From Tubulanus polymorphus (lineage: Eukaryota; Animalia; Nemertea), in the NCBI RefSeq assembly GCF_964204645.1, contig NC_134033.1:12222655-12286654 (forward strand): 64,000 nucleotides of DNA, read 5' to 3'. The translations under genes were made by a program, and so were the position numbers. Shown piece by piece: positions 54,147 through 60,085 of this stretch. Numbering within the stretch: the first letter of the stretch is position 1; every line of letters starts with the position of its first letter. Below the pieces are notes generated by a model that ran no database searches, had not been told where the DNA came from, and saw only the letters and a list, made by a program, of their open reading frames with translations.

Positions 54147-56321
54147 ATGGATGTCAGGATACCATCATACCGGATTGAGCTATTCGGGCTCCTGTTGCTA
54201 TGCGTTACGATACACGTGACCGGTGGATATACATACGAGTCGGACCCGACCGCCAGGCGGCGCGACCCGACGGACAGGTACACGCACAAAGGTCGCGTGC
54301 GCGGGACATCGTTCAATTTCAATGGTAAAACGGTCGACGCATTCCTTGGGATTCCCTTCGCCAAACCGCCGGTTGGAAATTTGCGTTTTAAACATCCGCA
54401 GCCAAATGACCGCTGGGAAGGCACCCTCGATGCAACTAAACTACCTCCGACGTGCGTACAAGCACCAGATTTATCCTTCGGAAATTTCTCAGGTGCCACA
54501 ATGTGGAACCCAAACACTGTAACGCAAGAGGATTGCCTGTATCTAAACGTATGGGTGCCTAGGACTACCCCGAGACTCAAACGATCTGCCGTGTTAGTGT
54601 GGATATTCGGCGGCGGGTTCACGACAGGTAGCGCCACCTTGGATGTGTACGACGGGCGCGTTATAGCGGCGGAAAGGGAAGTTATCGTCGTTTCGATGCA
54701 GTATCGACTCGGCTTTCTGGGATATATGGCGCTCGGTATACCGGATGCTCCCGGTAATGCCGGTATGTTTGACCAGTTGATGGCGCTGCAATGGGTTAAA
54801 AACAATATCAATTATTTCGGCGGTGACTCGAATAACGTTACGCTATTCGGTGAAAGTGCCGGCTCCGTCAGCGTAAGCATGCATTTGTTATCGCCGTTAA
54901 GTCGGGATAAATTCGCCCGCGCGATCATGCAAAGTGGCGTGGCTATCGGCGATTGGGCCACTACGACGATGGAGGAGGCAAAACGTCGGACTATACAACT
55001 GTCGAAGCTGGTAAATTGCACTAGAAATAGCTACGAAGCACTAGTAGAGTGCTTGCACAAAATACCGCCCATGGAATTCCCTAGTAGAGTGCTTGCACAA
55101 AATACCGCCCATGGAATTCCCTGAACATGAGTATAGCATCGTACGAGGCATCATGCAGTGGCCTTTCGTACCGGTCATTGACGGCACATTTTTCATCGAA
55201 CCGCCGACGTTGTCGTTAGAGCGCGGAAACTTCAAAAAGTGCCCGATACTTCTGGGCAGCAATAGCGACGAAGCGACCTACTTCATGTTGTACGATCTGC
55301 CGGACTACTTCAATCGAGAAAACGAGGACGCTTATATGACCAGGGATAAATTCATCAACAGCATGGAGCGATTCTTTTTCTACTATCCGCAATATCCGAA
55401 GGAGATGAATCGATTCGGCTTCGACGCACTCATGTTTCAGTATACGCCTTGGAAAAACGTGCACGACGGAATAAAAAGTCGCGATAACATCGACGACGCC
55501 GTCGGTGACTATCATTTCGTTTGCAAAGTAAACAAATGGGCGGAAGCCTACGCGAAGTTTAATTTGCCGGTGTATTACTATTATTTCACGCATCGTTCAT
55601 CGATGAATCCGTGGCCTCGATGGACGGGAGTCATGCACGCCGATGAGATACCGTACGTGTTCGGCGAACCTTTGAACATGAATCTGAAGTATACGCCGAA
55701 AGAACGCGAACTCAGTCGCAAGATGATGTCGTACTGGGTGAACTTCGGTAAGACTGGGTAGGTACATTTATTACTATATACGCGACTGTTCTATAAGCTC
55801 ATAGTTCCTTGCTTTGATGTTATCCTTTATGTGAGCCACCGATTGACCGTTATCAGTTATCCTTTACTGGCAGGGACTATAGCCACGGTTACACGAGCGT
55901 TCTTGGCCAGGGCCAACCCGTTCACACGGGTGTAACACTTGGCATGATCCGAAAAGTCGGACCGGACCCGACGAGCTAAACCTGAGCCTGAGCTGAATTT
56001 TAGCACTGATCACTGGTTCTTGGACTCACTTCGATTATAAGTTGATAATAGAAATAAATATTGAACATTTGGACAAAATTTTGGCAAAATCTTCGCGTCG
56101 CTTAACGTTTGTTTCTTTGATTTTCAGAGATCCGAACAATTCGCCCCGCTATGGGCTGCTCAACGAGTGGCCCATTCACAGTCTGCGCGGCAGGGAATAC
56201 CTCACTCTCAACACAGATACCCTCGATTCGCCGGACAAATCGAAAAATATCGGCCACGGTCCGAGGTCTCGCGCGTGCGCATTCTGGAACGACTATTTAC
56301 CAAATCTGCACGCGGCAACAG
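54147..56321 (+). CDS. ACHE: Acetylcholinesterase catalytic domain (coding exons 54147-55757 and 56128-56321); frame interrupted by a 40-bp tandem duplication at 55041-55120
   Basis: Signal peptide; FLGIPFAKPPVG, choline-binding Trp (GATMWNPN), EDCLYLNVW, oxyanion GGGF, triad FGESAG / NSDEATYF / VMHADEI, CAFWNDYLP. Introns at KTG|DPN (phase 2) and AAT| (phase 1). With the duplication removed the ORF is 653 aa (T form) or 638 aa (H form). Confidence 0.93.
55041..55120 (+). repeat. Exact 40-bp tandem duplication inside the AChE coding exon (frameshift)
   Basis: CTAGTAGAGTGCTTGCACAAAATACCGCCCATGGAATTCC twice, followed by CT microhomology; the ORF track splits AChE here. Confidence 0.97.
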
Positions 56322-57742
56322 GTAAGCGATACATACAGTGTCCGGCAGACGATGAGGCTCCGATTTATTAGACGAGCAATACCTGCCTTATGTGGACCTT
56401 TAGATACTAAAACCTTTTCATCGTAGCCATAGCTATGAATTTGCATGCAATCTTGAGGCTTATCAAATTTAGATAGAATGGTTTTCATCTTTTTGGTGCA
56501 ATGTCTCACTAATCTTGGTTTGATCTTTGAGACATGTGGCAGAGCAGTGACAACGAGGTATACTCGGCGCACACGGCTTAATCGCGATGATAATAATACT
56601 GATAATAATAATGGTGATATCCCAAACTGCCAGGAAAATTGATTGGATATGTTTCCACCTTCGGGAAATCAACGTCATAGCAGTGTCGAATAGATGGACA
56701 AAGAAAGTTCGAAACTCTACATTTATCCCGAATCGCATCGACATTTTCTAATAACAAATTCTGTTTGTAGTTGGATCATCGAGTATTGCACAATGGGTTG
56801 AGGTTTTATCCGAAGATGGGTCGATATAGGTGGTGGGTCAGTTTGCTGCACGGAGTGTTTTTTTATCTGCAATCGAAAGGGCGACACAAGTCGGTATTCC
56901 GAAGCCAAATTAGAAATTAAAGCCAATTCCGCAAGTTTTTATCGTTCTATTCCACCAGGAGGACAAACGAAGACCCATCGATGAAAAAATGGCCGCCTCA
57001 AACGCATCCTATGACAGCATCCCTCATTCCAACCTATGACTAATCTTCTACCCTGAATGATTCGACAGTCCCTCGTAACCGTCTTTCAAAATCAAAATCT
57101 TATTCATAATTTTCTATATTAAATGAATGGATTACATAAAAAAAGATTATTGATACCATATACATGGAGGCAGCCATCTTTTCTGGTAAGGTATCCATAT
57201 GGATGAATGGAGCGTACGTGCAGCAAACATGAACATGATTTATCAATCGGCACTTGATATGGTGATTAGGTATCTACTGTTTAATCTGGTGAAGGGATAT
57301 CGATGCTAATTGCTAACTATTTCTTACTCTACCCACCTTTAAAAATCCTATACGAGTCTCTATTCTTTCGCCTAACACGTATGCACGCCACCTAGCGGCT
57401 GAGGATGATATCGGATATTTTTCGACACTAACAGGTAACTACTACTAACATGATTTCATCAAATCGTAGTTTATTAGTAAAGTATGATAAGAGACAGAAA
57501 GGAATGCAAAATCTGCAAAAATATCGTTATCATCGCATTCCTGTTTTGGCATCTGGACACACTTTCACTCAATGTCTCATGCATTTGAGCACTTTTGATT
57601 CTCATTATATTAACCAATGTTTACTAACTATGTACAAACGTATCGAAAACGACGACCGTTGATTCAGTCGCAGATGACGAATTCCGGTTAGATTTTTGAA
57701 TTCGAATTCAACGGTTTAGTCTCGCTTCTGTTTATTTTTCAG

Positions 57743-57939
57743 AGCCAATCAGCCTCGCCGAACGCCGTTGGAAGCTTCAGTTCAACGAATGGAGCACTCG
57801 GTATATCGTCGAATGGAAACGTCAGTACGACAATTTCATCAACGATCAATTGAAATTCTGTCGTCACAATTTTCCAGTTCTCGATATTGAGCGGAGTTCG
57901 GCGGACGATTTTATCGACAACACCACCGAAGGCACATGA
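57743..57939 (+). CDS. ACHE: AChE alternative terminal exon T (WAT tetramerisation peptide)
   Basis: Acceptor tttatttttcag, phase 1; encodes [44 protein letters not shown], matching the aromatic pattern of vertebrate T ([26 protein letters not shown]..C). Confidence 0.92.
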
Positions 57940-58023: not shown

Positions 58024-58578
58024 ATATATATATATATATATATATATATATATATATATATGTATGTATATATATATATATATATATATATATATATATA
58101 TATATATATATATATATATATGTATGTATGTATGTATGTATGTATGTATGTATGTATGTATGTATGTATGTATGTATGTATGTATGTATGTATGTATGTA
58201 TGTATGTATGTATGTATGTATGTATGTATGTATGTATGTATGTATGTATGTATGTATGTATGTATGTATGTATGTATGTATGTATGTATGTATGTATGTA
58301 TGTATGTATGTATGTATGTATGTATGTATGTATGTATGTATGTATGTATGTATGTATGTATGTATGTATGTATGTATGTATGTATGTATGTATGTATGTA
58401 TGTATGTATGTATGTATGTATGTATGTATGTATATATATATATATATATATATATATATATATATATATATATATATATATATATATATATATATATATA
58501 TATATATATATATATATATATATATATATATATATATATATATATATATATATATATATATATATATATATATATATA
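58024..58578. repeat. Compound microsatellite (TA)n-(TGTA)~78-(TA)n
   Basis: Direct reading; TGTA block 58121-58432. Confidence 0.97.
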
Positions 58579-59933
58579 CATAACGATAAACAAATGCCTC
58601 TTGTGAGATGATTTTTTTTTTAATTTTCGTAAACCATGATGCATATAATCTCATGAACAGTTAATACTTTTCAATGGTGCTCATAATGTAAATTGATCAA
58701 TCATTTGACAAGGAACTATTCTTTCTTTCTTTGATATTGATATAACCATGAGTGTTCCCGTGTAAAATAGTAACTTAGTTCTTCATGGTTATTTTCAAAA
58801 CGATAATTTGACAGTTAATGTGCATATTATGTAAATAAACCGTTTTCCGGATTACCGGTAGGTAGTGTTGGCAATAAAAAGGCATACACGAACAAGGGGT
58901 CGATCCATGGACGGACATTTTGTCGTGCCTTACCCGAAAGAGAGCATGCACTTTTCCTTTAGCCCCTTTGGTTTAGACTGTGATACAGGAGGCCGGACTA
59001 ATGCAAAAGAACATTAAGTGTATAATGTACACATATCACAGATATAATCTTGACTTCGGAAGGGGAGTGTCAGTGCAGGTGTACCCCGTCTCCAAACTTC
59101 TTCCGATAATAGCTTTTGCGGCCGAAGTGTCATCGTTGCAGCGTTGGCATTTTTTGGTTGATGTGAGATCCGTTGTGGAGTAGGGGCTGGTCTGATCGAG
59201 TAGGGGCTGGTCAGATCGCCGTGCCCTGGTTCACTGACACCGGCGGATGTAAAACATCGTAAAGCGCTCGATCCCAGTTTGGCGTATTTTTGTAAATTTT
59301 CTGAAGAATGTTTTCTAAAAGTGCTGAATAAAGTTTTATTACCGAATCAACAATTAGACATTCATTTTATTCATCTTTTTTTCTTAATTTTCATTCAGTT
59401 TTTTCTATATACAGCGGCCCTCAACTCGGTTTCCTGTAAGTTGAAAGACGATTTTTGGATCCGTTAGCCATACTGAGGTGAGGTGTACGAGTCTCGCCAT
59501 GACTTCCGGATCGAATCCCAGTCGATGGAAAAAATTGATAAATTCCGGACAATATTCTCTATAGTTCCTCAATTCAATTATGAATGAATGATCGGCGAAG
59601 AAAGGCTTTTTCGTACAAGATAGTGCAATAATCAAATACAGGAGACCCAAGAGAGGTCAAAAATTGACTTCTACGAGTCTGGGCCCCTCACAAAGTCCCA
59701 CGTAACTATAACCTCATAAACACATGCACATGCCCTATAGACAAACACAAAAACATTGAGGCACCCGACACAGGGACGCTTATAGACTATACCCCTCTAG
59801 TTCCATCGACCTCCTCACCTCGCTGGATCGGTATTGCCATCTAAACAATGCATAAGTCGATAATCCGCGATGTAAGATGCGTCAGTTTATTATCCAGTGA
59901 AAACTGAATTTGTTCTTCGTTATTTTCTTCTAG

Positions 59934-60085
59934 CTAAATACCACGACCCGCGTAGTCCAGGCTGTTCGAGGAGTAACAGTACGTCATTGCGGACGAGCGT
60001 TGCTCTGGTGCTTTCCATTTCGGTTGCTGTTTTGATCGTCACTTCGCTGGTCGTCGTATCGGCGTCACGGGACACCGATCACTAG
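59934..60085 (+). CDS. ACHE: AChE alternative terminal exon, H-like (Cys plus hydrophobic GPI-signal or transmembrane tail)
   Basis: Strong acceptor tattttcttctag, phase 1 compatible with the 56321 donor; encodes AKYHDPRSPGCSRSNSTSLRTSVALVLSISVAVLIVTSLVVVSASRDTDH*. Confidence 0.8.

Follow-up and report, generated by a model that had tools for sequence, protein, structure and literature searches.

Can a single invertebrate gene supply both the T and the H type of acetylcholinesterase (AChE) subunit, which vertebrates obtain by alternative splicing, and if so, how old is that arrangement? The question is raised by a 64,000-nucleotide stretch of the genome of the nemertean Tubulanus polymorphus (RefSeq assembly GCF_964204645.1, contig NC_134033.1, positions 12,222,655 to 12,286,654, forward strand; here "the window"), where an AChE gene has one splice donor followed by two candidate last exons. 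Nematodes split the T and glycosylphosphatidylinositol (GPI) ends between separate genes, ace-1 (T) and ace-2 (GPI). In Torpedo and mammals, T subunits occur as monomers, dimers and tetramers and H as a GPI-anchored dimer, and T/H splicing has been presented as a vertebrate feature; invertebrate H peptides are described as widespread but not homologous, their GPI signals invented several times or gained by exon shuffling (PMC3045457). A preliminary description of the window proposed one gene with T, H-like and read-through ends, in an exon order reversed from that of vertebrates and so either convergent or older than assumed. We find that the gene is very probably a lophotrochozoan AChE orthologue with two mutually exclusive last exons, T and H, on one phase-1 donor, and that T before H is a widespread arrangement; among the loci examined, it is the jawed-vertebrate order that differs.

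One donor, two last exons

RefSeq already holds the T form of this enzyme (XP_074657701.1), which matches the exons of the window except for a few residues at one gap. This protein has a COesterase domain with the triad S237, E362 and H484, a tryptophan at the Trp84 choline site (W120), the oxyanion glycines G156/G157 and six cysteines (three disulfides), and by these features the gene is predicted to encode a cholinesterase of the AChE kind. Its gorge residues are unlike those of the shark proxy at positions 70 (A), 121 (T), 279 (Y), 288 (M), 290 (W) and 442 (D); Asp at Torpedo position 442 is common to Tubulanus AChE and mosquito ace-1. A quick maximum-likelihood tree, whose lophotrochozoan clade roughly matches the species tree, places the gene as sister to two Lineus longissimus AChEs (support 97) within that clade (99). 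In the 268-Mb T. polymorphus genome it is the sole AChE orthologue; the gene model was searched exon by exon. Contig C12 (~1,474,450-1,477,400, minus strand) carries a divergent paralogue of the cholinesterase gene whose introns sit at the same positions; an H-type last exon follows ~85 nt past its phase-1 donor, which is at the same donor position, and no match to a T exon was found in it.

The features that define the two ends of the window gene are directly observed (Table 1). The donor after 56321 is canonical (CAG/GTAAGC), as are the two acceptors, pyrimidine-rich YAG sites at 57743 and 59934. Each of the exons behind them continues the frame of the shared exon, so the donor can join either one, as had been proposed. 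Homology of the T exon is likewise observed rather than modelled: it scores 23.6 bits against the Pfam family AChE_tetra (PF08674; E 4.4e-5), slightly below the 25-bit cut-off and the top match genome-wide, and is 50 to 68% identical to the T exons of relatives. With three periodic Trp and a C-terminal Cys on the last exon, it is assigned on its sequence to the AChE-T (WAT) type.

The distal exon at 59934 fits the template of AChE-H, having a Cys before the putative omega site, a polar spacer and a hydrophobic C-terminus. It is single-copy in the genome. A filter tuned to 21 reference H peptides, all of which pass it, picks out no other H-like terminal exon on either strand of the 99 kb surrounding the gene. 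The background of this filter, beyond the 59934 exon and the H exon of the paralogue, was 3 weaker chance hits in ~365 kb strand-bases; on the loci of relatives it returned the annotated H exon alone in three and together with one other hit in a fourth, but did not pick it up in Mya. Among 600 candidate last exons scored with a profile of the relatives' H peptides, the 59934 exon came 1st or 2nd, at non-significant E values of 0.07 to 0.23. The exon thus resembles the relatives' H peptides in composition, not in sequence. In a rule-based GPI assessment, small-residue candidates for the omega site were found 9 to 11 residues upstream of the hydrophobic run.

A third end, from reading through the donor into the intron, had also been suggested. 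The frame exists up to 56371, but in seven other loci the read-through extensions run from 4 to 27 residues and have in common only the first residues, which the donor encodes. Because any intron yields some read-through peptide, and because the lengths vary and nothing is shared, an R form is unsupported by these comparisons, and we set it aside as a meaningful third product.

The same layout in related animals

Database annotation assigns both T and H isoforms to a single gene in Lineus (in two paralogues), Lingula, Owenia and six bivalves (Argopecten, Mizuhopecten, Pecten, Mya, Ruditapes and Potamilus), and to Branchiostoma (amphioxus) ACHE in several assemblies. We take these database isoforms to rest on transcript evidence through the annotation pipelines. 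The layout itself can be seen in the loci: wherever both exons were mapped in an invertebrate (6/6 loci), the shared exon is followed by T and then by H, with the phase-1 donor at the same residue, and at least one AATAAA lies between the T and H exons in every locus counted. In the shark control, Stegostoma, H (15779) lies upstream of T (about 29415). T before H is the widespread order. The survey of orthologous loci that the preliminary description had called for therefore comes out in favor of one gene with a T exon and then an H-type exon, in five of five lophotrochozoan loci and in amphioxus; an exon order peculiar to Tubulanus is rejected, T then H being found in four lophotrochozoan phyla as well as amphioxus.

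The Lineus, Lingula, Owenia, bivalve and Branchiostoma genes share with Tubulanus an orthologous catalytic domain as well as the donor and the order. They differ in that their H forms are annotated, which that of Tubulanus is not, and in that the Tubulanus T tail and H hydrophobic run are longer. Conservation of the hydrophobic exon, on which the earlier proposal had been made to depend, holds for position and for the order of Cys, spacer and hydrophobic run and fails for sequence, which does not align.

Table 1. Coordinates in the Tubulanus window and, below them, positions of the two last exons in the mapped loci of other invertebrates
Feature	Position	Strand	Remarks
Large catalytic exon	54120..55757	+	ATG 54147, signal-like N-terminus, catalytic Ser/Glu/His, phase-2 donor at end
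Perfect 40-bp tandem duplication	55041..55122	+	Frame shift between catalytic Ser and Glu/His
Shared exon (DPN...LHAAT)	56128..56321	+	Phase-1 donor serving both last exons
Read-through frame, 16 residues	56322..56371	+	Stop at 56371; not conserved
T (WAT) last exon, 65 residues	57743..57939	+	Trp 10/17/25, Cys 40, 25-residue tail past Cys; used in RefSeq model
(TATG)n/(TA)n microsatellite	58027..58577	.	Within presumed T 3' untranslated region or intron
Three AATAAA (58834, 58873, 59327)	58834..59332	+	Candidate proximal poly(A) signals of T mRNA; consensus matches only
H-type last exon, 50 residues	59934..60085	+	Cys 11, Ser/Asn-rich spacer, ~23 hydrophobic residues, short polar end
AATAAA 525 nt past H stop	60610..60615	+	Candidate distal poly(A) signal; consensus match only
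Lineus locus	T 14659, H 16049		Order T then H
Lingula locus	T about 23400, H 30181		Order T then H
Owenia locus	T 15433, H 20973		Order T then H
Mizuhopecten locus	T 39011, H 64577		Order T then H
Mya locus	T 20763, H 30924		Order T then H
Branchiostoma lanceolatum locus	T 18454, H 21447		Order T then H

Three minor observations concern AChE genes of other animals. Isoform X3 of Lineus longissimus (P0222) has a third C-terminus, joined at that same donor position and made up of 7 residues that include a Cys. A fused two-gene model in Amphiura filiformis (P0155) has a C-terminus that is T-like at its start and H-like at its end, possibly an echinoderm H-type end. In Owenia (L024:18848-31133) and Mizuhopecten (L025:56056-74680) an opposite-strand strawberry-notch (SBNO) gene overlaps the AChE H exon; no SBNO gene adjoins the Tubulanus AChE gene, and a gene with AAA_34 lies ~2 Mb off on the same contig.

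Which forms the Tubulanus gene would make

The two last exons would compete for the donor at 56321. Use of the near acceptor, with cleavage at one of the AATAAA signals at 58834, 58873 or 59327, would yield the T subunit; by analogy with known T forms, its WAT helix and Cys would build dimers and tetramers. Bypassing the T exon together with its poly(A) sites, splicing to 59934 and cleaving near 60610 would yield the H subunit, predicted to be a disulfide-linked dimer whose hydrophobic end is swapped for a GPI anchor. The poly(A) sites, the oligomer states, the addition of GPI and the use of the H junction in Tubulanus are what we infer here; for the last of these, the splice from 56321 to 59934, we regard use as quite probable.

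Four observations weigh against this account. RefSeq has only the T form for T. polymorphus, in a cluster of one member with no H isoform; no significant DNA or protein similarity was found between the 59934 exon and the H exon of any relative; the 59934 hydrophobic run is the strongest of 22 compared (19-residue mean 2.85, against a maximum of 2.43 in the others) and is followed by charged residues; and the assembled gene is frameshifted, upstream of both last exons, by the 55041-55122 duplication. The first of these would suit a gene that yields T only, its 59934 frame decayed or a product of chance and its membrane enzyme supplied by the H-only C12 paralogue. The Haliotis clusters, which have T isoforms only, fit such a gene, and at ~3 H-like hits per 365 kb the chance of one hit falling within 6 to 10 kb is estimated at roughly 5 to 8%. 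Yet all five lophotrochozoan orthologues mapped have an H exon at the matching position, with nearly equal spacing in the closest relative (donor to H 3.1 kb in Lineus, 3.6 kb in Tubulanus), and the 59934 frame is open behind a strong acceptor, with Cys, spacer and hydrophobic run in the correct order; a T-only gene is a slim prospect. Because its hydrophobic run is the strongest of those compared, a real alternative is that the distal exon is used and encodes a C-terminal transmembrane anchor instead of a GPI signal. That would agree with ~23 uninterrupted hydrophobic residues before a polar, charged 7-residue end, and a plain transmembrane exon gets a similar score in the H profile test; the omega-site candidates ahead of the run and the polar tails that also end several reference H peptides argue the other way, and we hold such an anchor to be rather improbable.

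The duplication was overlooked in the preliminary gene model, of which the donor and both last exons, canonical and in frame, nevertheless stand. The 40-nt gap by which RefSeq spans it is devoid of splice dinucleotides and leaves three wrong-looking residues in the model. Should the duplication be real and the sequenced copy a recent null allele, no enzyme of any form would come from this allele, and both the presence of the duplication in the assembly and the non-splice gap needed to bridge it would be explained. The two 40-bp copies are identical, however, the triad and the six Cys are retained, and the exon halves on either side are intact, at 57 to 61% identity to Lineus; a null allele seems unlikely. 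As both halves are well conserved and belong to the only orthologue in the genome, the duplication is likely a slip in the assembly or a recent, heterozygous allele.

Vertebrate and arthropod counterparts

Torpedo and mammalian ACHE are like the Tubulanus gene in that a single gene has a phase-1 donor at the end of its last shared exon and both a WAT-type T exon and a GPI-type H exon to join to it, and the shark locus has the same coding layout of a large exon, a short shared exon and alternative ends. The order of those ends, H then T in the shark and T then H in Tubulanus, is different, so the vertebrate-type 3' cassette (H upstream of T) is absent from Tubulanus. Other differences are the lack of any sign of an R form and of any match over the cut-off to the proline-rich attachment domain (PRAD) anchor PRIMA1/PRiMA in a search of the T. 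polymorphus genome (ColQ, another PRAD anchor, was not searched). What does an invertebrate T peptide bind when PRiMA is not to be found? In the T peptides of invertebrates that were compared, Trp stands at 10/17/25, as in Tubulanus, and in most of them Cys stands at 40; vertebrate T peptides have Trp at 10/17/24. On this spacing the T exons are homologous. The only PDB matches of the Stegostoma H exon are Torpedo-type AChE chains, and these are weak (E 1.3). Most of the arthropod ace-1 proteins examined carry an H-type C-terminal peptide, placed as in Tubulanus.

AChE isoforms with H-type ends are also present in three frogs and a lungfish (P0275, P0283, P0327, P0304), a wider vertebrate spread than PMC3045457 describes.

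Age of the switch

Of the two explanations offered earlier for the reversed order, convergence or an older system, the second gains from relatives that share the layout; the idea that the order is an oddity of Tubulanus does not survive, since among the loci examined it is the jawed-vertebrate order that differs. That nemerteans, brachiopods, annelids and molluscs inherited the layout from their common ancestor, if not from an earlier one, is well supported, and the T-before-H order may predate the protostome-deuterostome split. A single origin of the switch that includes amphioxus is about an even bet, because the H exons resist alignment and there are just two orders in which the exons could stand. 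In its fuller form, to which we give almost an even chance, the T-then-H switch was present in the protostome-deuterostome ancestor and was kept in lophotrochozoans and amphioxus; genes with T only or H only would have lost one end (counted here are nematode ace-1/ace-2, arthropod ace-1, most echinoderm and hemichordate genes, amphioxus ChE1 and the C12 paralogue), and the upstream H of jawed vertebrates would be a later re-invention or a move.

Alternatively, T then H arose separately in lophotrochozoans and amphioxus, GPI signals being easily invented and the site past T permissive for a new last exon. Such separate origins would account for H peptides that align only at one Cys and the hydrophobic run, and for the T-type ends, without T/H pairs, of most echinoderm and hemichordate proteins examined. 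The one hemichordate locus, in Saccoglossus, has no H-like exon within 2.3 kb past the T stop, where the available sequence ends, and counts for neither view. Separate origins accord with the view, relayed in PMC3045457, of several GPI-signal inventions in cholinesterases, and agreement of two lineages on one of two possible orders is by itself weak evidence. Against them, both lineages share the position and phase of the donor, the three-part coding layout, the Trp/Cys spacing of T, and the order. We consider separate origins quite possible, at rather less than an even chance.

T/H splicing is known for vertebrate ACHE, and invertebrate T/H isoforms are already in RefSeq, unnamed as such. In the literature within reach of our search, which did not extend to the 2010 Pezzementi and Chatonnet review or a 2012 Pezzementi nematode paper, we found no account of one invertebrate gene making T and H, nor of a conserved T-then-H order. 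With a conserved T-then-H cassette in amphioxus and in four lophotrochozoan phyla, the switch is no younger than the lophotrochozoan ancestor, and inspection of the DNA past the T exon in a few further phyla could test a bilaterian origin. A further prediction is that one gene supplies both tetramer-type and membrane-anchored AChE in the bivalves and annelids that serve as pesticide biomarkers.

Other features of the window

Two neighboring minus-strand open reading frames, 5126-5842 and 8159-8821, each encode two terminal hydrophobic stretches with a Cys-Cys motif, and are candidates for CD225/dispanin-like proteins. Positions 34755-35366 hold a tandem array of 13-codon units in which both strands are open.

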